Of a DNA stretch of 64,000 nt, positions 5,836 through 62,902 are shown one piece after another. Under the pieces are notes generated by a model. It was not told the origin of the DNA and searched no databases. It saw only the letters and a program-made list of their open reading frames with translations. Source of the stretch: Mobula birostris (lineage: Eukaryota); assembly GCF_030028105.1 (NCBI RefSeq), contig NC_092383.1, positions 87,811,921 through 87,875,920 of the forward strand, written 5' to 3'. Each line of letters begins with the position of its first letter. The first letter of the stretch is position 1. Position numbers and translations under genes: made by a program.

Positions 5836-6181
5836 AAGAAGAGAAGATGGCTAAACCCACATCCCTGAGCAGAGCCTGTGTTGATTGTCAGCAAGTTGGA
5901 GATGCTACTTCCAATCTGCACAGATTGAACCAACGGACCAACAGAAGAAACAGCAGATGCACAAGTTGGAAATGCCTAACTGAGCGATTCCACTTTCACT
6001 GTAACTTCAAGAACAATCTCAGTGAAATAAGGATTAACATCAGAGATAAACTATTAAAATGGAACATGATCTCTGCAAAATCATGGAATTTTCTGAACAA
6101 CTGAAATGATGAGTTTATATTGCTTACTGCACTTTGTTCTGGTGACGTGTGAGTGACCTTTCATTATTAATCTCTTCACAG

Positions 6182-6505
6182 GCTCAACTGCATTAACTGG
6201 ACCTGAGAAGGTCAGAGGAGTAGAGGGAGAATCAGTCACTGTGGAATGTCGGTATGATCAGAAATACAAGGACTACGTGAAGAAATGGTGTAGAGGTGAA
6301 GCTTACTTTGGTTGTCAGGATCTGGTTTCGACTGAGCAGCCACAAAATGGACAAGTATCAATGACTGATAACAAAACACAAGGGATATTTTCAGTAACCA
6401 TGGATAATCTAAAGATGAGTGACGAAGGGCTATACCAGTGTATAATACAAAGGGCAATGTTGATACCGAGCGAAAGGTTTACCATTTCACTGGAGGTTTC
6501 TGAAG
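6182..6505 (+). CDS. Gene 1, V-type Ig domain exon of a CD300/CMRF35/pIgR-like receptor
   Basis: Acceptor tctcttcacag ends 6181, donor GTATGT starts 6506; 324 nt, phase 1-1. Translates (G)STALTGPEKVRGVEGESVTVECRYDQKYKDYVKKWCRGEAYFGCQDLVSTEQPQNGQVSMTDNKTQGIFSVTMDNLKMSDEGLYQCIIQRAMLIPSERFTISLEVSE. Has the V-set B-strand Cys, DxGxYxC, and the extra WC...C pair typical of the CD300/pIgR/TREM family. Confidence 0.9.
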
Positions 6506-10493: not shown

Positions 10494-10816
10494 GCTCAAC
10501 TGCATTAACTGGACCTGAGAAGGTCAGAGGAGTAGTGGGAAAATCAGTCACTGTGGAATGTCGTATGATCAGACTAACAAGGACTACGTGAAGAAATGGT
10601 GTAGAGGTAAAACTAAAGTTGGTTGTCAGGATCTGGTTTCGACTGAGCAGCCACAAAAAGGACAAGTATCAATGACCGATAACAAAACACAAGAGATATT
10701 TTGAGTAACCATGGACAATCTGAAGATGAGCGAAAAAGGGCTATACCAGTGTATGATAGAAAAGGAAATGTGAAAACCGAACGTAAGGTTTACCATTTCA
10801 CTGGAGGTTTCTGAAG
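10494..10816 (+). pseudogene. Second, inactivated V-domain exon inside gene 1
   Basis: Paralogous to 6182-6505 with intact AG/GT, but 323 nt: 1-nt deletion at CGG>CG (~10563). In the restored frame there are TGA stops at 10702-10704 and 10771-10773. Confidence 0.9.
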
Positions 10817-10863
10817 GTACGTTAATAATTTTCTTCACTCTCCCAGCCTGGGAATTTCCTCCT

Positions 10864-15523: not shown

Positions 15524-15650
15524 CTCCAGAAAAGAAGGCAACCACCTTGGAAATTTCCACTGAAACCATGTGGACCACTTCACCTCAGAATGAGATGTCC
15601 ACCAGGAAAGCAGAATCCACTGAGTCTTCAGTTTCCTCACGTCAGATCAG
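15524..15650 (+). CDS. Gene 1, Ser/Thr-rich stalk exon
   Basis: Acceptor ccactttag, donor GTTAGT at 15651; 127 nt, phase 1-2; (A)PEKKATTLEISTETMWTTSPQNEMSTRKAESTESSVSSRQI. Phase fits the V exon and TM exon; an open paralogue lies at 57512. Confidence 0.8.
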
Positions 15651-17599: not shown

Positions 17600-18785
17600 A
17601 CTTCAATAATAAACAAATGCTTGGAGAGGCTGGTCAAGGACTACACCTGCAGCACACTACCACCCGTACTGGACCCCCTGCAATTCACCTACCGACACAA
17701 CTGATCGACAGATGACACAATAGCCACAGCTATACACACCATCCTTACACACCTGGAGATGAAGAATGTTTATGGGAGAGAATGCTGTTCTTAGACTACA
17801 GTTCAGCATTCAACACCATAATTCCCTTCAAGCTTGACAAGAAGCTCAGAGACCTCGACCTTCACACTGCCTTGTGCAGCTGGATCCTGGACTTCCTGTC
17901 ACCTCTGCCCCTCTGACCCTCAACACAGGAGCCCTTCAGGGCTGTATCCTAAGCCCTTCCTTTACTCTCTGTACACCATGACTGTGTCACCACCCACAGC
18001 TCCAATCTGCTAATTAAATTTGCTGATGATACTACATTGATTGGCCTTATCTCAAATAATAATGAGGCGGCCTACAGAGAAGAAGTCATCACCCTGACAC
18101 AGTGGTGTCAAGAGAACAACCTCTTCCTCAATGTTACAATAACAAAGGAGCTGATTGTGGACAACAGGAGAAATGGAGACAGGCTAACCCCTATTGACAT
18201 CAATGGATCTGGAGTTGAGAGGGTGAACAGCTTTAAGTTCCTCAGTCTGTGTGGTGAAAAAAGCACAACAGTGCCTCTTTCACCTCAGACAGTTAAAGAA
18301 GTTTGGCATGAGTCCCCAAATCCTAAAGAGTATCTATAGGGGCACAGTTGAGAGCATCCTGACTGGCTGCATCACTGTCTGGTATGGGAGCTGTACTTCC
18401 CTCTGCAGAGAGTGGTGCGGACAGCCCAACGCATCTGTAGATGTGAACTTCCCACTATTCAGGACCTGTACAAAGACAGGTGTGGAAAAAGGGCCGGAAG
18501 GTACATTGAGAACACCAACCACAAATTGTTTCAGGTGCTATCATCAGGGAAATGGTACTGCAGCATTAAAGCCAGGACCAACAGTTCTCTGACACAGTTT
18601 CTTCCACCAGGCCATCAGACTGACTAATTCAGGCTGGTGCAATTTTATTTCTATGCTATATTGACTGTCCTGTTCTACATATTATAAATTACATATTGCA
18701 CATTTAGACAGAGACATAATGTAAAGATTTTAACTCCTCATGTATATGAAGGATGTAAGAAATAAATTCAATTCAATTCCAATAT
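17600..18785 (+). mobile_element. Degenerate Rex1/Babar LINE 3' part
   Basis: KFADDTTLIG, LRQLKKFGMSP, ESILTGCITVWYG motifs; AATAAA + (TTCAA)n tail; paralogue ~58700-59875. Confidence 0.85.
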
Positions 18786-18829
18786 ACAGTACAGTAGCCA
18801 CCCCTACAGGCAATGTTTTGATCATCTAC

Positions 18830-19850
18830 CTACAGAAAAGGTGCCAATAAGGTTGAAAGAGTACAGAAAAAAAATTCAAGTATGTTTCCAGGATGGGCAG
18901 AGTTATATGGGGAGATTGAATAGGTTAGGACTTTATTTCTTGGAAAGTATGTGGTGTATAGATAGGATAAATGCAAGTAGTTTTTTTTTCCACTGAATTT
19001 GGGTGCAACTGCAACTAGAGATTATGGGTTAAGGGTGAAAGGTGAAATGTTTAAGGGAAACATGACAGGAAATATCTTCACTCAGAGTGTTGTGAGTGTG
19101 TGGAATGAGCTACCAGTGCAAGTGATGTGAGCGAGCTCAATTTCAATGTTTAAGAGAAGTTCAGATAGCTACATGGATGGGAGGGGTGAGCGGGCTATGA
19201 CCCAGATGCAGGCCAATGGGAGTAGTCAGTTTAAATGGTTTGGCTTGGACTGGATGGGCCATAGGGCCTGTTTCTCTCCTGTACTTTTCTACTTCACTAT
19301 GACTCAATGTAAAGATAGGCAGGAAAGTAAGCTGTGAGGTGGGTAATAATTCACAGAGATTCTGAAAGATTAAACGAGTGGACGAAGATGTGAAGTTGAT
19401 ACTTTGGAAAGATGAGCGAAAGAACATTAAAACTATTTGAGTAGAGAAGAAACTGCAGAAAGTTGCAGTGTTAAAAGGTTTGGGTATCCTTGTGCACAGA
19501 AAGCCAGCACATAGTGAATCAGGTCAGGAAGGCTAATGGACCGTTGGCCATTTCTTCACCAGGGTTGGAGTATCATGGCAGGGAAGTCTTCTGGTTGCTA
19601 GTGAGACCTCATTTAGAGTATCGTGAATAACTTTGATCTTCCTATTTATGAAAAGATTTCATGAAGGCAGTTCAGAGAAGGATCTCTGGGGTGTTCCTGG
19701 AGGGATCCTGGAGGCCTGCAGGGATTGTCCAACAAAGTTAAAAGTTCAGCATTTTGCAACACTAGACTTTCATGCATACTCCAATGAGTGTGCAGTCTAC
19801 TTTTAGAAGGGTGCAAGATGATCTTATTAAACTATGTAAGATTTTTTCTG
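18830..19850 (+). mobile_element. Two adjacent degenerate CR1 3' fragments
   Basis: FTQSVVSVWNELP-type CR1 C-terminal sequence; paralogue ~59930-60960. Confidence 0.65.
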
Positions 19851-21340
19851 GGGGTGATCAACATAAATTGTGAGAGGGAAGCACAAAAGACTGCAGATGT
19901 TGGAATCTGAATATAAAAATATCAAACCCCTGGAGGAACTCAATATGCCAAGTAGCCAAACCCCTGCATCAGGGGTGAGAGGGTAAAGAGCAGACCGTCA
20001 GTATAAATAGGTGACAGGGAGGAAAGTGGTAGGGACAGATAGGTGATAGGTGGGACCAGATGATGTGGGATTAATGGGCAGGTAAGGGTGGGGGACAGGA
20101 AAGTTCAGACACAAGAGGCTGCTGGGTGATCAGAAAGAAGAGATAAGGACCTAAAAAAAGGTCAGGTGGAGTCAAGTGGGGGAGGGGAGGGTGAAGGTGA
20201 GGTCAAAGGCTGGAGACTGATAAGTGGAACTCGATGAAAGTATGATAACCAGATAAAACCAGGTAGGGAGGAAAGGGATAGAAACGGTAAGGCCAAAGGA
20301 GAGGAAACCCAGGTGGATAAGTGTATAAGTGAGTGATGGGCAGAGGGAGAGGGAAAGGTGAACAAAGGGAGAGGGAATGAGGAAGGAACATGAAGGTGTT
20401 AATCAGTCTATTGTTTTGGGAGAAGTAACTGGTCTTGAGTCCAGTGGTGCTGGTGTGGATATTGTATAGTCTCTTTCCTAATGGGAGAGAGAGAAAGAGA
20501 TGGACAGGATGGCTGTAATCCTTCATAATATTGCTGGCATTTTACCAGTACCTTTCTGTATATACTGCGTGTCCTTGAAAAGCGTCGGGAAAAGGCAAGC
20601 AATATCATGAGGGATCCTACCCACCCTGCTGACGGACTGTTTGGCTCCCATCAGGACTCACTTTTTTACAACCTTCTACAGGAACCTGCCATTTACTGTG
20701 TAAGTCCTGCCTTGGTTTACCTTCCCAAAATGTAACACTTCACACTAATCCTACTTAAATTCTATCTGCTATTCTTTGCCCCGCTCTCCAAATAAATAAA
20801 GATCCCGTTATAATCAAAGAAAACTTCTTTATTGTCCACTAAACACCAATTTTGGTGTCATCTGCCTGGAAACTATATGAGTCATGCCAGTTACTCGCTC
20901 ATCCAAATGGTTAATATGGACAACAAACAAGTGGGTACATAGCACCATTTCCTGCGGTACAGGGCTCAGTACTGAAAAACAACCCTCCAATTCATCCCTC
21001 TGACTCCATCCACCAGAACAATTCTATATCCTCCACTTCAGCTGGCTGCAAATTCTACACTCTCACCAACCTCTGATTGAAGAAGTTCACCCTCATATTC
21101 CCCTTAAATATTTCACTGTTCACACCTAACCCATGACCTCAAGTTCTAGTCTCATCCAACGTCTGTGGAAAATAGCTTGTGAGCATTTACCCTGTCTAAA
21201 CCCCTCATAATTTTGTAAACCTCTATCAAGTCTCGCTTCATTTCTCAATGCACCAGGGAATAAAGTCCTAACATATTCAAACGTTCCCTACACTGTTTCG
21301 GTTACTGATTACTTTGTGAGCAATAATTATATTTTCTTAG

Positions 21341-21454
21341 TCCATCAGGAACACAACGGAAAATTCACCACTTTTGGGCTCTGACCCGCTGGATAGTCTT
21401 TGGAGTTCTGGTTCTTTGCACCGTTTCAATACTTTGCATGACAGCTGTTCAAAG
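21341..21454 (+). CDS. Gene 1, transmembrane exon with intramembrane Arg
   Basis: Acceptor attttcttag, donor GTATAT at 21455; 114 nt, phase 2-2; (S)PSGTQRKIHHFWALTRWIVFGVLVLCTVSILCMTAVQ(R). Read-through past the donor would stop at TGA 21516-21518. Confidence 0.8.
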
Positions 21455-22131
21455 GTATATTGTTTCCAATCTCTTCACTTCCATGTTCACACTAAATGCA
21501 ATCAAAGGCAGAATCTGAAGAGTTGCTGTGAATTCCCTGAGATAACTGCTTCACATAGGAGAGATTATAACCTGCACATTAAGTCAAAGTTGAGTTGATT
21601 GTCATTTGCATAGATACGTGCATGCACAAGTTCAACAAAGAACATGCAGCAACAACACAGACAGAGTATCAGGTGCACAACATTAAAACATGAATTATAT
21701 AAAACTATAAAAGAAAGAACTCAATTAGACAAAAAAATCAATTATTGCAAAGACGTCAAAGTGATCATATAGTTGCCATACAGCAATGCCTCAAAAAGTG
21801 GCGTCCATTATTAAGGGCTCCCATCACCTAGCACGCGACCTCTTCTACAAGAGACACAGGATCCTGAAGGCACACACTCACCAATAGAATTCTCACCAAT
21901 ACAATACCAATTCTCCCCCTCTGCCATCTGATTTCTGAATCAAAATTGAACCCATAAACTTACCTTACTGCTTTTTTCAGCACTACTTATTTATTTTCAC
22001 TGTTTTACATATATATACTTACTGTAATCCAGTTTTTTATTCTTATATATTGCAATGTCCTGCTGCTGCAAAAACAACAAATTTTAAGATATATGCCAGA
22101 GATATTAAACCTGATTCTGATTCTGATTACA

Positions 22132-22420
22132 GAGTGCCACGTTATTGTAGCAGTTAGCGAGATGCTATTACAGCTCGGGGCAGCAGAGCTCAGAATTCAA
22201 TTCCTGTATCCTCATTAAGGAAACCTGTAGGTCTTTCCCAAGTGCACGTGGGTTTCCTTGAGTGCTGTGATTTCCTCCCACAGTCCAAAGACATACCAGT
22301 TCGTAGGTTAATTAGTCTATGTAAGTTGCTCTATGATAAGCCTGGGGTTAAAGAGGTGGGTTACTGACCGGCCACAACTCACAGGGCCAGAAGAGCCTGT
22401 TCCACACTGTATCTCTAAAT
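22132..22420 (+). mobile_element. tRNA-derived SINE (V-SINE/HE1-like)
   Basis: tRNA-like head, central gtgggtttcct...tttcctcccacagtccaaagac motif, AATAAA tail; paralogue ~63583-63870. Confidence 0.65.
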
Positions 22421-23769
22421 AAATGAATACTGAGATAGAGATTACGGTTCTGCAGTTCCTTCAAGAACCAAATGGTTGAACCTTGAACCTGGTGATGTCA
22501 AACTTCAGGCTTCTGTACCTCCTGTCCGATGGTAGCTGTGATAAATGCATAGTCCAAATGATGGATCTTGCACGATGGTTGTTGCCTTCACAAGGCTCCG
22601 GCACCTGTAGATATGCCCAGTGGTGGGGAAGGATGTTCCCATGATGTAATAGGCAAAGTCCACTACCCTCTTCAGCTACTTATTTTTCTGCAATTACCAG
22701 ACCACGATGTAACAAGTCAAGATACTTTCAAAAGTACATATTTAGAAGCTTGTTAGAGAGCTCCTTGAAATATTGAATCTCTTTGACTTTCTTTGGCATG
22801 CAATTTTTGTGATTGTATCTACTAACCATTATCCTTGGAGTGAAACAGCAGCGGCGACACACAAATGGTTATACGCCTGAACAAAATGTGTATAGACCAT
22901 ATGAGAAGAATAATATTGAAATGAAGGCTAATAACTGTATTTGAATTCAGATTCACATGTACATTGCAACATACAATGAAATGCATCATTTCCATTAACA
23001 ACCAGCACACACAAGGACATTCACAAGTGTCACCACACATTATGGTAACAAAATAGTATTCCACATTTCTCCGCAGAACAATGTAAGCAACAACCGCAAC
23101 AACAACAACAAAACAAATCAATAACAGCAAAACTAGTCCCTTTCCCGTCCCTTCCATACACTAACTCACCACCCCACCCCACACACATAGACAATCAGGC
23201 CTGCAACCCAGGCCAGGCCACCTCAAGGCCTTCAGTCCTTGAGCCAGATTCTCAAACTCAATCTATAAAAATTATTCTTCTGATGAAATGGCACTGCACA
23301 CTCATGCTTAGCTTTTCAGGGCTAGAGAGGGTGGTCACCATTTGGAGACATACAAATCTCATCACATGCATGCCCTGACACTACGCTTCCATTTACCTCC
23401 AATCTAATTTCACCATACCCTTCTGACATGTTACTAGACAGCTCCCCCACCCCACCCACTCCCCAAACAACTTTATGGCACTTCACTCACAACTCCTGCA
23501 GCAAACAGCTCACAGTCTTCTCCCTTTGGGCCCCACCAGCCTGCACATCATCCAACATCCACACTCCACGCACTACAGCCCCAAGGAAGCCACACAGTTT
23601 AACAGACTCACACACCAGCCTACCAACACACCATCCACATCACCACCACATAAATCCATCCATCCCTGACACTCCACCTGGAGACTATCAACAGTGTCTC
23701 TTGATGAGAAATATCATCAATCACATTGCAAATTCTCACCTCTTAATCAGTGACTTTCTGTTTTTCTAG

Positions 23770-23851
23770 ACAAGCAAATGAGAAAGTCCATGAAAAGCAG
23801 AACCTACGACTAAGACAAATCAGCCCAGTTTCCAGACCAGAGATTCGCTGA
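23770..23851 (+). CDS. Gene 1, terminal cytoplasmic exon (short, no tyrosine)
   Basis: Acceptor ttctgtttttctag; phase 2 entry gives (R)QANEKVHEKQNLRLRQISPVSRPEIR-stop (TGA 23849-23851), followed by AATAAA at 23980. Confidence 0.65.
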
Positions 23852-23979
23852 AAGGACCGGTAGTATTTTGACCTGAACTCACAAGTTGCTCTCAGTGATG
23901 TGAAATGTTTTACTTTTTACCAAATGAAAGATTGTGTAAAATTTTGCACAAACAATAATGGTCAAAATAATCCAGATTG

Positions 23980-23985
23980 AATAAA
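23980..23985 (+). terminator. Candidate polyadenylation signal of gene 1
   Basis: AATAAA about 130 nt after the predicted stop codon. Confidence 0.45.
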
Positions 23986-25484
23986 AATGACTGAACTTTG
24001 TAAACACTATTGACCAATCCTTTGTAATAATGCAACAACAACTTGCATTTCCGTGGCACCTGGAATATGGTAGACAAGTCCCGAGGTGCTCCATAGCAGT
24101 GTCGTCAGAATTTGCCACTGAATCACAAGACCTGTTATAAGCACACGACCTAGTGCTCAGTCAACGAGCTGGGATTAAATGAGCATCGTCAACAGGGACT
24201 GAGAGACTTCAGGTTTGAATCCAGAACTCAGAGCCTGGACTGATGAAGATATGACCACCAGAGAAAGAAGAATTAAGATCAGAGATGTTCTAGTCATCTA
24301 GCTCCAGGAAATATATCTACAGGAAAATCTGTAGATTTGGACTCTCAGGTTTATGATATGTTCCAGTTCTGGTCGTGGTTTTTTGCTACTGCTTTTGGGA
24401 CATTTTTGAATCAGGGTGGCCTGCAGATAATGGAACACTGAGCTAAACTGTACTGAAATATGCCTCTTGAATTTGTGTCTTTATATTCCCTGCTTTTGCT
24501 CGGTTTTTTTTGTTAGTGCCTGCGTGATTTTTATGCGCGTGAGGGAGGGGGCTTTGATTCTTTTTCAAAGGGTTGGTTCTGTAGTTTTGTTCTGTGATAG
24601 TCTGTGGGGAAGACGAATTTCAAGGCTGTGTACTGCATACATATATTGATAATAAATGTACTTTTGACCATTAATAAGATTGCAAGACAGAAGAGAAAAT
24701 TTACAAGGACGTTGCTGGGACTTGACAACCAGAGTTATGAGGAAACGTTGAACAGGTTCGGAATTTGTTCCCTGGACCATTTGAGATTAAGGGGAGATCT
24801 GAATGAGGTATACAAAATGATAAGTGTAAATACAAGCAGGCTCTTTCCACTGAGGTTGGGTGGGACAAGAACTAGAGGTCCTGATTAAGGGTGAAAGGTG
24901 AAATGTTTAAGAGAAAGATGAGGGGGAAGTTCTTCACTCAGAGGTTGGTTAGAGAGTGGAACAAGCTGCCAGCGGAAGAGATGGATGTTGGTTTTGTTTT
25001 CAACTTTTCTGAGATATTAGGATAGGTAAATGGTGGGAAGGGGTCGCAGCAGCAAAATAGTTCAGAATGGGTTTGTGCTGTAGTGCTCTATGACTCTACT
25101 CTCAAGAACACAGAGTCAATACCTTAGGGAGTCTGTTCTTGTTGCCAACAGCACAATATTGTAGGGAACACCATGTACTTGAATGGAAATTGGTCAATCG
25201 CACATGATGCTGATGCAGGTTTCCCATTTATCAAGCCTTTTGTGGCTGGGAATTCCCAGGACAGTGACAATTCTTGACACGGAGTGGCCAGTGACGTCAA
25301 CAGCAATTAATTCCAATTAATGGAAGAAGTTCTGGGGAGGCTAAAGCTTCAACAAAAAGGCAAGACACACCTGCCTTCTCCCCAATGCCTACTCACAGGC
25401 AGACATCTCAAAGATGACTGACCATGAGATCTGAACACAACGCTCCCCACGATCCCTCCCCTCCACAAATGTCTATAATTTAAA

Positions 25485-32873: not shown

Positions 32874-33065
32874 GGAACTGGTTTCTTTGACTACTGCCTG
32901 AAAAAGGAAGTGACTAACTCAAACAGAACTCAGACACCCAACCCACTCGACACAGCTGGAACAGGGGGTGGTGCAGGGTGAATCTACCCACCAGAAAAGG
33001 CAGAGAACTACAGGAACAATTCCTGTGTAGGTTCTTACCTCTGTTGACATTTCATCAGATAAATA
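32874..33065 (+). pseudogene. Decayed copy of the receptor promoter and leader exon
   Basis: Colinear with 34121-34312 (aggaact.gtttctttga...aaggaagtgac...gcagggtgaa...caccagaaa...tctgttg...atcag.taaat). It lacks the ATG, and the donor reads ATAAAT instead of GTAAAT. Confidence 0.7.
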
Positions 33066-34209: not shown

Positions 34210-34306
34210 ATGGAGTTGCTGCAGGGTGAAGTCACTCACCAGAAACGGCCCAGGATTGTGGAATCTATCGCTTTCTTGTTTCTCATCTCTGTTGGTTTCA
34301 TATCAG
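34210..34306 (+). CDS. Gene 2, leader (signal peptide) exon
   Basis: ATG in strong context (A at -3, G at +4); MELLQGEVTHQKRPRIVESIAFLFLISVGFIS(G) ends in a hydrophobic h-region. Phase-1 donor GTAAAT at 34307 matches the phase-1 acceptor of the V exon at 42824, giving ...ISGSTA/LTEP. Confidence 0.7.
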
Positions 34307-35492
34307 GTAAATCATTATTTTATAAAATAATCTGATCAGTTGAATTATTAACAAGTGGCCTAAAGTGTTTTTGTCAAAGCAACTGATGAATAACAGGAAA
34401 TTCTGATGTCGTTCCCTCGCTCGGTGGTTCATCTAATGGTAAATCACTTAGTCTGCAGGATCCTGCAGTAACCTCCATCAGTGTCTGTGTGGTGTTCTGT
34501 GTAGCCAATGTGTACACAGCAAGTTCTCCTGAATAGCAAAGAGATAACTGCCCTCTGCCCTGCTTTTTGCCCTTGGTGGTGGGGATAATTCTCATCCTGA
34601 ACAAGGAGGGTCCTCTAAGAGTGCCAAGCTCCCTCAGATGTACACTCCGTCAGTGCTCAGGCTCCTGGAGCGCGAGAGGAACCGGAAACTCTCTGACTCA
34701 GTGGCCAGAACATCACCCATTGAGCTTTACCCAGAACACACCGCTGGCACTGGGTGGGGTACAGCCAGCCTGGGAAAGCCACAGTGGACTGCTCGCGAAG
34801 TGGTGGATGCAGGTTCCATTTCAATATTCAAGAGAAATTTGGATAAGTACATAGATGGGACGAGCATTGAGGACTACAGTGTGGGTGAATGTTGATGGGT
34901 CTAGGCAGATTAATAGTTCATCATAAACTAGATGGGCTGAAGGGCTTGTTTCCATACTGTAGTGTTCAATGACTCTATGCCTCTATGACACTCTCTATAC
35001 ACTGCATGGGAAAACGTTGAATTATAGGACACTCTAATAAAAATGTGTGCAACCCAACCTTTGGAAACAGATGTTCTTCTGAAATCAGGAAGCACCACAA
35101 GCTCTTCTTAGTTTCACATTTGCAGAATTTGCCCCAATGTCTCCCTTCTGTTAAAAATCATCTGTTCACCACAATAAATCGCAACACAGCGGGCCCTAGT
35201 AGCTTGAGCACGTCTGCACAGTGGGCTTTACCCAGTCTCTGAAGATCAGGTTACTGAATTCCTCGATGGTAACCGGTGATTGATCTGATCACACATCTCC
35301 ACACCGGCTCCTTACACTACACAATGGGGAGTGTGGTGTCCACTGCCCTCATTACCAGTGACTGGAAAGAGAATTGAATGATGTTATGTTTCAGAGACTG
35401 GATGACGTGCAGTGTGAAGATGTTCCCGAGCTGCCAGTATCCATGGCAGACAGTTTATTTCATGTGAGTGGCTACTTTAACTGTAATAGACC

Positions 35493-41400: not shown

Positions 41401-44400
41401 TTTGCTTTTTGATTCTGTACTGCAAGAGCTCAGGGAAACCAGCATCAAGTTCTCTGTATGTGTCCACAGACATGGCGATAATAAAGGATTCTGATTCTGA
41501 TTCTGATTTTTATTCTAGGGAGTACAATCATCACAGCAATATTTGATTCTGTGCTTCCTGCTCCCTGGAGTACAAATCGATAGTAAATATTAAAAATTTT
41601 AATTATAAATCATAAATAGAAAATAGAAAAGGGAAAGTAAGTTAGTGCAAAAAAACCAAGAGGCAGGCCCAAATCTTTGGAGGGCACGGCCCAGATCCAG
41701 GTCAGGATCCGTTCAGCAGTCTTATCACAGTTGGAAAGAAGCTGTTCCCAAATCTGGCCGCACGAGTCTTCAAGCTCCTGAGCCTTCTCCCGGAGGGAAG
41801 AGGGACGAAAAGTGTGTTGGCTGGGTGGGTCGTGTCCTTGATTATCCTGGCAGCACTGATCCGACAGCGTGCGGTGTAAAGTGAGTCCAAGGACGGAAGA
41901 TTGGTTTGTGTGATGTGCTGGGCTGTGTTCACGATCTTCTGTAGCTTCTTCCAGTCTTGGACAGGACAACTTCCATACCAGATGTGATGCACCCTAGAAG
42001 AATGCTTTCTACGGTGCATCTATAAAAATTAGTGAGGGATTTAGGGGACAGGCCAAATTTCTTTAGCTTTCTCAGGAAGTAAAGGCACTGGTGGGCCTTC
42101 TTGGCAGTGGACTCTGCTTGGTTGGACCAAGTCAGGTTTATTTGTGATATTGACCCCGAGGAACTTAAAGCTGTTGACCTGTTCCACTTGCACACCACCG
42201 ATGTAAATGGGGTCGTGCTGTCCGCTACTCCTTCTGAAGTCAACAACCAATTCCTTCATCTTGCTGATGTTGAGGGATAGGTTATTGTCTTCACACCATG
42301 CTACCAGGTTCTTAATTTCCTTTCTGTACTCAAACTCATCATTACCCGAGATACGGCCTACAATTGTGGTGTCATCAGCAAACTTATATATTGAGTTCGA
42401 TGGAAGCTTGGCTACACAATCATGGGTGTACAGTGAGTACAGCAGGGGGCAGAGTACACAGCCTTGTGGGGCACCCCAAGAAGAGAAGTTGGCTAAACCC
42501 ACATCGCTCAGGAGAGCCAGTGTTGATTGTCAGCAAGTTGGAGATGCTACTTCCAATCTGCACAGATTGAACCAACAGACCAACAGAAGAAACAGCAGAT
42601 GCACAAGTTGGAAATGCCTAACTGAGCGATTCCACTTTCACTGTAACTTCAAGAACAATCTCAGTGAAATAAGGATTAACATCAGGGATAAACTATTAAA
42701 ATGGAACATGATCTCTGCAAAATCATGGAATTTTCTGAACAACTGAAATGATGAGTTTATATTGCTTACTGCACTTTGTTCTGGTGACGTGTGAGTGACC
42801 TTTCATTATTAATCTCTTCACAGGCTCAACTGCATTAACTGAACCTAAGAAGGTCAGAGGAGTAGTGGGAGAATCAGTCACTGTGGAATGTCGGTATGAT
42901 CAGAAATACAAGGACTACGTGAAGAAATGGTGTAGAGGTGATTCTAACATTGGTTGTTCCGCCGTGGTTTCGACTGACCAGCCACGAAGTGAACGAATAA
43001 CAATGACTGATTACAAAACACGAGGGATACTTTCAGTAACCATGGACAATCTAAAGATGACTGATGAAGGGCTATACCAGTGTATAATACAAAGGGCAAT
43101 GTTGATACCGAACGAAAGGTTTACCATTTCACTGGAGATTTCTGAAGGTACGTTAATATTTTTCTTCACTCTCCCAGCCTGAGAATTTCCTCTCTCACCT
43201 CTGGATGAAGTAAAAATATTCTTTATATGCCCTCTAAATCTTTTATTCCTTACCTTAAACTTCAGTCCCAGGTTACATACGCCGTGAGCCAAAGTTTACC
43301 ACAAACAATTCCATCTATTCCCCATATAGTTTGGCAGATATCAGTCAGTCCCCCTTCAGTCTTCACCTCCCCAAAAAATACAATCTAGTCTCTCTAGTCT
43401 TTCCACATAATTTAATCGTTGCCTATCAGGCAACATCCCGGTGAATCTCCTTTGCAGCCTCTCCGCCCTGCTCCCTTATCCTTCCTACAAACTGCTCATT
43501 ACAACTGCACTAAAAGAATGCTTCGGATTTCTGACAATCTGAACAAAATACAAATGATAAGAAGTGGGAATCCTTTGCTGAACAGTTAACAGATTACATT
43601 ATCTCTGTCTCAATTATTAAAGAGATGAAATCTTGAACATTATTTTCACATCCCTATGGGAAATTACCAGAGCATTTTATATCCACCCTTCACCTTTACC
43701 CTTCCTTTCTCCCCCTCTCCACACTGATCACTCTCCCCTTCCTCAGTGTTCTTCCTTCTCTCTCCATCCCCACAAACCCTATTCCCACTCTCCCATCTCA
43801 GATGCTCCAGTTTCCCAGCAGTGGGAGTTCGAGGCCAGGCCTTTTCCCTGTAGTCCCAGCAGTGGACAGACTGGGATCAGGAACCTTCTGCTTTCACTCT
43901 GTCACCTTGGTTCAGCACAGAAATTTTGACCCAGTGGGATCTGCGCTTGTGACCAACAGCAAGAGCCCAGCTTCGGTGTGGGAGATGTCCCAGTATGGAT
44001 GGAGGGGGAAATGCAGTCCCAGCTGCTGAGGGGATTTTCAGGGAACTGGGACACTCTCAGGAACATTCTTTGACCAGGAACACAATAGCTCATCTGGAGA
44101 GTGTCCACAGAAATCACTACTTTCCTCAAAACTGATGATAGCAAAAAGGTTGATCATGGACTTTCACCAGAAATAAATTCCCCAAAATAAAAGGAACTTT
44201 TTCAGATCACTATTTAGAAAGATTCCAGAAATTACACTCAGTGCCCATTTTATTATGCATTGCCTTTACCTAATAAAGAGGCTACTGATGTATGTTCATA
44301 ATCAATAAAATGTGAGAACACAGCTTTCAGGAAGGTGATGACTGCTTTGCTGGATGTCGATTGCAGTGTTGCATTATCTGCGTAATTGGAAAAGTAGTTT

Positions 44401-57511: not shown

Positions 57512-57632
57512 CTCCAGAAGAAGAAATTTCCACAAAAAGCGTATGGACCACGTGGACCACCTCACCTCAGAATGGGATGCACACCAGGAAAGGAGAATCC
57601 ACTGACACATCAGTTTCCTTACATCCGATCAG
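57512..57632 (+). CDS. Gene 2, Ser/Thr-rich stalk exon
   Basis: Acceptor ctactttag, donor GTTAGT at 57633; 121 nt, phase 1-2; (A)PEEEISTKSVWTTWTTSPQNGMHTRKGESTDTSVSLHPI; paralogue of 15524-15650 with in-frame indels only. Confidence 0.75.
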
Positions 57633-62794: not shown

Positions 62795-62902
62795 GAACAC
62801 CGAGCAGAAAATTCACTACATTTGGGCTCTGACCCGCTGGATAGTCTTTGGAGTTCTGGTTCTTTGCACCGTTTCAATACTTTGCATGACAGCTTTTCAA
62901 AG
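62795..62902 (+). CDS. Gene 2, transmembrane exon (uses a shifted acceptor)
   Basis: The position equivalent to the gene 1 acceptor reads TGG. The AG at 62793-62794 gives a 108-nt phase 2-2 exon, (R)NTEQKIHYIWALTRWIVFGVLVLCTVSILCMTAFQ(R), with donor GTATAT at 62903. Confidence 0.65.

Follow-up and report, generated by a model that had tools for sequence, protein, structure and literature searches.

Mammalian receptors of the CD300/CMRF35-like family (CLM, LMIR) carry a single V-type immunoglobulin (Ig) domain of the CD300/pIgR type with four cysteines. They are clustered, and inhibitory members with ITIMs (immunoreceptor tyrosine-based inhibitory motifs) stand beside activating members that have a short tail and a charged transmembrane (TM) segment. 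In the activating members the charge is a mid-membrane Lys or Glu (in part after PMC5974347), whereas in the genes described here it is an Arg placed high in the helix, within a W-x3-R-W motif. These genes, gene 1 and gene 2, are tandem copies about 41.4 kb apart in a stretch of 64,000 nucleotides (nt) from the manta ray Mobula birostris. The whole stretch is called the window below; coordinates are positions in it, and all exons are on the + strand.

Among cartilaginous fish, the MDIR family of the clearnose skate has to be considered, of which MDIR1 has a charged TM residue. As described in outline (Cannon et al. 2006, Immunogenetics 58:362, cited in PMC3031540), the MDIRs are a multigene family with activating and inhibitory members, whose Ig domains resemble those of CD300, TREM and pIgR (PMC3031540). 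Likened by this general description, MDIRs share with the present cluster a variable number of Ig exons, the gene upstream of the window (gene 0) having three V exons. Cartilaginous fish are already known to have activating as well as inhibitory CD300/pIgR-like receptors, under the name MDIR, and the present genes are no new system.

A second comparison is given by receptors that signal through FcR-gamma or CD3-zeta. CD89/Fc-alpha-RI, NKp46, NKp30, KIR2DL4 and macaque KIR3DS resemble the present proteins: their TM Arg is high, their tail is short, and they themselves lack a signalling motif (PMC13107469, PMC8102735). They differ in that both the ectodomain family and the TM sequence are unrelated. 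FcR-gamma offers a high Asp, which is matched by a TM Arg at position 4, and DAP12 a central one, matched by a Lys at position 9 (PMC8102735). Similarly, the Arg used for gamma/zeta lies in the top half of the TM domain in CD89, NKp30 and NKp46 (PMC13107469).

Results

Two tandem receptor genes

In our reading, to which we give a probability of about 0.65, genes 1 and 2 are tandem duplicates within a CD300/pIgR-like ('CMRF35-like', skate-MDIR-like) cluster of paired receptors, and both are of the activating type. The cluster lies on a chromosome-scale contig (C18) of a 4.0 Gb genome. The duplicated blocks are mostly 90-96% identical, and in each protein a single V domain is followed by a short stalk, by a TM helix in which one Arg is conserved, and by a tail of 27 residues. 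The V domains have the V-set Ig fold (PF07686, E=1e-14 for gene 1 and 7e-14 for gene 2, both above the curated cut-off). Each V exon encodes four Cys, an extra pair (KKWC...GC) standing beside the canonical one. The best match to a solved single domain was CLM-1/CD300LF (82.5 bits), followed by pIgR D1, CMRF35-H, TREM2 and NKp44. The likeness to CD300 is at the level of the family, with no particular CD300 gene assigned as orthologue. The nearest annotated proteins are 'CMRF35-like molecules' of the horn shark.

The exons of gene 2 assemble into a clean open reading frame of 243 residues with leader, V domain, stalk, Arg-containing TM and tail. The leader exon (MELLQGEVTHQKRPRIVESIAFLFLISVGFIS, 34210..34306) ends with a phase 1 donor and is 80% identical to the N-terminus of the stingray protein P0008 (Hemitrygon). 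It is followed by the V exon (42824..43147), by a stalk exon of 121 nt (57512..57632) that ends with ATCAG in phase 2, and by the TM exon (62795..62902), which is in frame after the stalk and reads ...HPIRNTEQKIHYIWALTRW..., with the Arg codon at 62835-62837. The Tyr-free tail exon lies beyond the window, at window-equivalent positions 65218-65301. At the stalk-TM junction, gene 2 (HPIRNTEQKIHYIW) matches the annotated P0008 (SSHPIRNTERKIHYVW). The idea that gene 2 had lost its TM-exon acceptor was rejected, as the frame runs on from the stalk into the G that follows cag at 62795, just as it does in the Hemitrygon model.

In gene 1, the V exon (6182..6505, 324 nt, phase 1/1, splice sites read) is followed by a stalk exon (15524..15650; APEKKATTLEIS...SSRQI) that also ends with ATCAG in phase 2 and is 84% identical to the stalk of P0008. 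The TM exon (21349..21454) reads ...KIHHF WALTRWIVFGVLVLCTVSILCM TAVQ at 21351-21452, the whole stretch reading ...TQRKIHHFWALTRWIVFGVLVLCTVSILCMTAVQ. The last coding exon (23770..23851), delimited with spliced RNA contigs and translated, encodes the tail RQANEKVHEKQNLRLRQISPVSRPEIR up to the stop codon. The 3' untranslated region (UTR) extends to at least about 24680.

The two V exons are less alike than their surroundings. Between 6184-6504 (gene 1) and 42826-43146 (gene 2), 28 nt differ and 23 of 107 residues are changed, while the introns flanking the V exons are about 95% identical. Judged from these alignments, the differences look like the result of diversifying selection or of patchy gene conversion.

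The transmembrane arginine

The initial annotation had reported one TM sequence with an Arg near its extracellular end in both genes. This could be read directly: positions 21375-21440 and 62823-62888 both encode WALTRWIVFGVLVLCTVSILCM, with no difference between them. Identity between the copies covers the whole TM core (21373-21446) within a stretch that is about 96% identical, and a 48-nt probe of this core gave two exact matches (21375 and 62823) as compared to 0 expected in shuffles. The Arg (CGC, 21387..21389 in gene 1) is the fifth of 25 hydrophobic residues (WALTRWIVFGVLVLCTVSILCMTAV; W9 to V33 of the gene 1 exon) and the sole charged residue of the segment. Neither gene 1 nor gene 2 has a Lys in the TM, and hence neither has the mid-membrane Lys of the DAP12 type.

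Six TM exons of the W-x3-R-W type were found in the M. birostris genome, all within C18:87.78-88.02 Mb. A full-library search combined with name look-ups also recovered this TM type in three sharks (Heterodontus, Scyliorhinus, Hemiscyllium), a skate (Leucoraja), a stingray (Hemitrygon) and a sturgeon (Acipenser ruthenus). The motif is invariant in five of the manta exons and in the proteins of these six taxa. When 13 TM segments were aligned, the Trp at -4, the Arg and the Trp at +1 were invariant and most other positions varied. The Hemitrygon TM (VWALTRWILFGVLVLSTVS) is almost identical to that of gene 1 and gene 2, and P0008 reads ...SSHPIRNTERKIHYVWALTRWILFGVLVLSTVS. The tails of the homologues are short and variable, nearly all without Tyr. 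Forms with a mid-membrane Lys occur among more distant matches, for example P0093 and P0142.

Several of the elasmobranch homologues already bear names: 'CMRF35-like molecule 3/5/7' in Heterodontus, 'CMRF35-like molecule 3' in Scyliorhinus and 'polymeric immunoglobulin receptor-like' in Hemitrygon and Leucoraja. They share with the manta genes V domains that are 55-75% identical, the W-x3-R-W TM and the exon order. They differ in that the annotations are automatic and several models have more V domains or stop at the TM exon. The TM type is the family's own in cartilaginous fish and in a sturgeon, and the earlier suggestion that a CD300 ectodomain had been joined to a TM segment of foreign origin is not supported.

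An inhibitory twin

A third gene of the cluster, gene 3, lies about 21-48 kb past the end of the window (C18:87897195-87924108). It consists of a leader, a V exon, a stalk, an uncharged TM (WHIILAIALSVLFLLLITAMIIC) and an ITIM-like exon with three ITIM-like motifs (VVYASV, NTYVNL and VTYSAV). Between its V exon and that of gene 2, 2 of 321 nt are different, and in its V exon gene 1 stands apart from both by 28 nt, with 23 residues changed. With nearly the same V exon in both, and an uncharged TM and three ITIM-like motifs in gene 3, genes 2 and 3 have the make-up of a textbook activating/inhibitory pair. Through gene 2 and gene 3, one and the same ligand would then elicit opposing signals.

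A comparable split is found in the horn shark. There, P0001 combines three ITIM-like motifs with an uncharged TM, and P0002 and P0003 carry an ectodomain of the P0001 type on an Arg TM (IWPIFRWLLVGALVICTVSV) with a ten-residue tail. P0001 and P0002 are 89% identical over the ectodomain. A second ITIM exon was observed in the manta genome at C18:88086165.

Transcripts and the cytoplasmic tail

Logan contigs of four public runs (X1-X4) were aligned to 18200-24150. Runs X1, X3 and X4 come from organism A, and X2 from a differently labelled organism B. Two contigs, from runs of two studies, are continuous from 21452 to 23768 (X2 record 15, 1362 nt; X3 record 22, 1095 nt). Allowing for an ambiguity of two bases ('ag') at the joint, this continuity places a GT-AG splice at 21454/23770, showing that the tail exon is real. 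The tail of 27 residues without Tyr, noted from the outset for gene 1, follows from the translation of 23770-23851 behind this splice. An ITIM-bearing tail had been named as one outcome that would speak against an activating receptor. The RNA splices to the Tyr-free exon, and no ITIM-like exon was found in the 64-kb window by tblastn and a motif scan. An open frame at 22848 (SETAAATHKWLYA and a stop, ...HKWLYA at its end) was considered as an alternative tail and rejected, as no RNA joint leads to it.

The contigs of organism A differ from gene 1 exactly where gene 2 does, that is at three substitutions in the TM exon, at nine in the 3' exon and at a 21-nt deletion at 24041. Therefore, expression in the species itself is shown for gene 2, not for gene 1. 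Upstream of 21359 these contigs contain 163 nt, a length accounted for by 30 nt from the V exon, the stalk of 121 nt and 12 nt from the TM exon, which fits the order V-stalk-TM. In contrast to this gene 2 form, the X2 contig of organism B has the gene 1 form of the TM exon. Its alignment starts at 21347, where it would if the V exon (ending ...GAAG) were joined to 21349, and its 441 nt of upstream sequence correspond to a 324-nt V exon plus 117 nt. This indirectly favours skipping of the stalk in gene 1. The start of the TM exon also had to be corrected: the acceptor at 21341 had been proposed at first, and both the RNA and the stingray homologue support the cag acceptor, with the exon starting at 21349 in gene 1 and at 62795 in gene 2.

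In the 3' UTR of gene 1, positions 24041-24061 (21 nt) are absent from gene 2 and from all aligned RNA contigs, including the gene-1-like contig of X2. This pattern suggests an indel polymorphism or an exchange between the copies.

Mode of signalling and candidate adaptors

The TM Arg, the short tail free of motifs, the ITIM-bearing twin gene 3 and the same split in the horn shark all agree with the initial annotation in pointing to activating receptors. Judged from sequence, the proteins are quite probably adaptor-dependent activating receptors. In such a mechanism, the Arg would pair inside the bilayer with the Asp residues, two in number, of a disulfide-linked adaptor dimer carrying an ITAM (immunoreceptor tyrosine-based activation motif). 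This pairing would bring the receptor to the surface and allow it to signal through Syk-type kinases. The most likely partner would be FcR-gamma or CD3-zeta, since both likewise have the Asp close to the top of the TM helix.

Candidates for both adaptors are present in the genome. Two exons scored above the cut-off of the TCR_zetazeta profile (PF11628), one on C18 (56.6 bits) and one on contig C7 (59.5 bits). The C18 exon (C18:98440460-98440546) is the TM exon of FcR-gamma, with the TM Asp and the dimerising Cys. The ITAM that belongs to it is split as EEGVYT/GLGEHHIDTYESL between exons near C18:98448567 and 98449064, the last of which reads GLGEHHIDTYESLQQKAPRKM and ends with a stop. The gene at C18:98.44 Mb is, as predicted from these exons, a complete-looking FcR-gamma (FCER1G) orthologue, and 10.6 Mb of the same chromosome separate it from the receptor cluster. 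The C7 exon (C7:39.29 Mb) corresponds to CD3-zeta and also has the TM Asp and the dimerising Cys. With the Pfam DAP10 profile, nothing in this genome scored above the cut-off. The Pfam ITAM profile gave three weak matches, which are uninformative since introns split ITAMs. Structure prediction of a complex between the TM exon peptide and two FcR-gamma TM exons gave a score of 0.03 (mark 0.34), which weighs neither for nor against the pairing.

The initial annotation had treated Arg as the mark of FcR-gamma coupling and Lys as that of DAP12 coupling. This rule is indeed stated for other receptors (PMC8102735, PMC13107469), though it is not strict in the CD300 family, as LMIR8 illustrates (PMC5974347). 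Coupling of the manta receptors to FcR-gamma/zeta specifically, whose basis is this literature rule, would thus have a little less than an even chance.

Evidence bearing on alternative readings

The observations that weigh against adaptor-coupled activating receptors encoded by both copies concern the choice of adaptor, the depth of the Arg in the membrane and the state of gene 1.

As regards the adaptor, mouse LMIR8, a CD300 member, has a TM Lys and yet couples to FcR-gamma (PMC5974347), so that the choice of adaptor within this family departs from the residue rule. NKG2D pairs its Arg with DAP10 (PMC13107469). Moreover, a 33-residue TM probe after human DAP12 detected a DAP12/DAP10-like TM exon (CEACYRIGTGALIGIIVGDVAITILIAAATYYLTRR) with a mid-membrane Asp on contig C9, at C9:129251922. 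The manta receptors could then be activating and use an adaptor of the DAP12/DAP10 type (Asp-x3-Thr, mid-membrane) or a fish-specific one in place of FcR-gamma/zeta. We consider this unlikely: an Asp at mid-membrane would be far from their Arg, which stands close to the helix's outer end, and the two papers cited above associate a high Arg with gamma/zeta and a central Lys with DAP12. The C9 exon itself is not confirmed as DAP12, no ITAM or YxNM exon being seen within 20 kb downstream of it. The same probe also detected three TM exons resembling CD3 gamma/delta/epsilon, with CxxC...D in the TM, clustered at C24:14.12-14.18 Mb.

A second point is how deep the Arg lies. It is followed by 17-20 hydrophobic residues, as compared to 15 after the Asp of the manta's own FcR-gamma and zeta. 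The Arg would sit about one helical turn higher than the adaptor Asp, with Trp at -4 and +1. In receptors of the CD89 type, the distance from the Arg to the cytoplasmic end is about 15-16 residues, against 17-20 here. Because of the length of hydrophobic sequence behind it and the flanking Trp, the Arg may be located at the outer interface and not in the membrane core. It might, by this account, be an interfacial anchor without any role in adaptor binding, and the proteins would serve as decoys that do not signal, or would compete in shed or soluble form with the inhibitory gene 3. The twenty hydrophobic residues after the Arg (WIVFGVLVLCTVSILCMTAV) suffice to span the bilayer core, Trp residues are typical of membrane interfaces, and the canonical stalk-to-TM splice of gene 1 leads to a frameshifted product without TM. 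However, the Arg on the extracellular side is unchanged from sharks to a sturgeon amid otherwise variable TM segments, which argues for a specific partner. An ITIM-bearing twin is what usually marks activating receptors that are coupled to an adaptor, and gene 2 is in frame through the TM. An anchor of this kind thus appears improbable, and we retain the adaptor-coupled receptor as the preferred reading.

The third point is gene 1, which lacks a leader as far as searched, contains one dead V exon and carries a 2-nt deletion in its TM exon. No leader exon was found from 5.9 kb upstream of the window (from the gene 0 tail onward) to position 6181. The only signal-like open frame, at 6106-6148 with a GTGAGT donor, was rejected as a leader, because the intron left would be 33 nt, which is too short. 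The dead exon, a second V exon at 10494..10817, was recognised in tblastn searches that used Hemitrygon P0008 and the gene 1 V exon as queries; it has one frameshift and two in-frame stops. The 2-nt difference between the TM exons (after 21354 in gene 1, 62800-62801 in gene 2) is more readily explained by a loss from gene 1, because gene 2 and the stingray homologue both have the longer form. As a consequence, the ancestral splice from the stalk to the cag acceptor shifts the frame in gene 1 and gives the TM-less product, which ends with ...DSCSKTSK. The TM frame is intact if the V exon is joined directly to 21349, or if the stalk is joined to the alternative upstream acceptor at 21341, and only then.

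Gene 1 may accordingly be decaying. It could be a degenerating duplicate, a pseudogene or a leaderless cassette, leaving gene 2 alone as a working receptor gene. The missing leader, the stops and frameshift of the second V exon and the loss of the stalk-to-TM frame used by gene 2 and Hemitrygon agree with this, as does the fact that the organism A contigs listed all have the gene 2 variants. Against it, the X2 contig of organism B shows the gene 1 TM exon without the 2-nt insertion and fits an in-frame V-to-TM transcript with a leader. In addition, the gene 1 V exon is open, and the high proportion of residue changes among its differences from gene 2 resembles selection and not decay. We therefore regard the loss of gene 1 as a serious but less probable alternative to two activating receptor genes. 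It concerns gene 1 only.

Neighbouring copies and limits of the duplication

The duplicated block begins at window position -1792 for the first copy and at 34762 for the second, just 3' of the gene 2 leader (34210). A dead copy of a leader, with a stop, was observed at 32968-33057. Upstream of the window, at window-equivalent positions -20268 to -4543, lies gene 0, a multi-V member of the same CD300/pIgR-like family. It has a leader, three V exons, a stalk, an Arg TM (IHHVWTLTRWILLGALLLCTVS) and a Tyr-free tail. Its third V exon contains an in-frame stop.

Discussion

For the most part, the locus is as ordinary as its family would lead one to expect: charged-TM paired CD300-like receptors are expected in this lineage, and relatives have already been annotated automatically. 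What is modestly new is the conservation of W-x3-R-W from sharks to a sturgeon, the near-identity of the V exons of genes 2 and 3, and the presence of elasmobranch FcR-gamma and pIgR-type genes. According to a study of 2014 (PMC4016189), FcR-gamma and pIgR-type genes occur only from bony fish onwards and are absent from sharks. Contrary to this, both are clearly present in an elasmobranch.

Genes 2 and 3 provide a concrete, readily testable elasmobranch activating/inhibitory pair, together with candidate adaptor genes from the same genome. Beyond this pair, the Arg-TM module common to sharks and a sturgeon bears on the timing of adaptor-coupled innate receptors. A further possibility, which we put forward tentatively and hold to be rather doubtful, is that the whole CD300/pIgR-like family started out with W-x3-R-W as its module for coupling to FcR-gamma/zeta. 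The ancestor shared by cartilaginous and bony fish would have possessed it, and the mid-membrane Lys or Glu modules of mammalian CD300 genes would have taken its place later. If this were true, FcR-gamma-coupled paired innate receptors would stand at the base of the jawed vertebrates.

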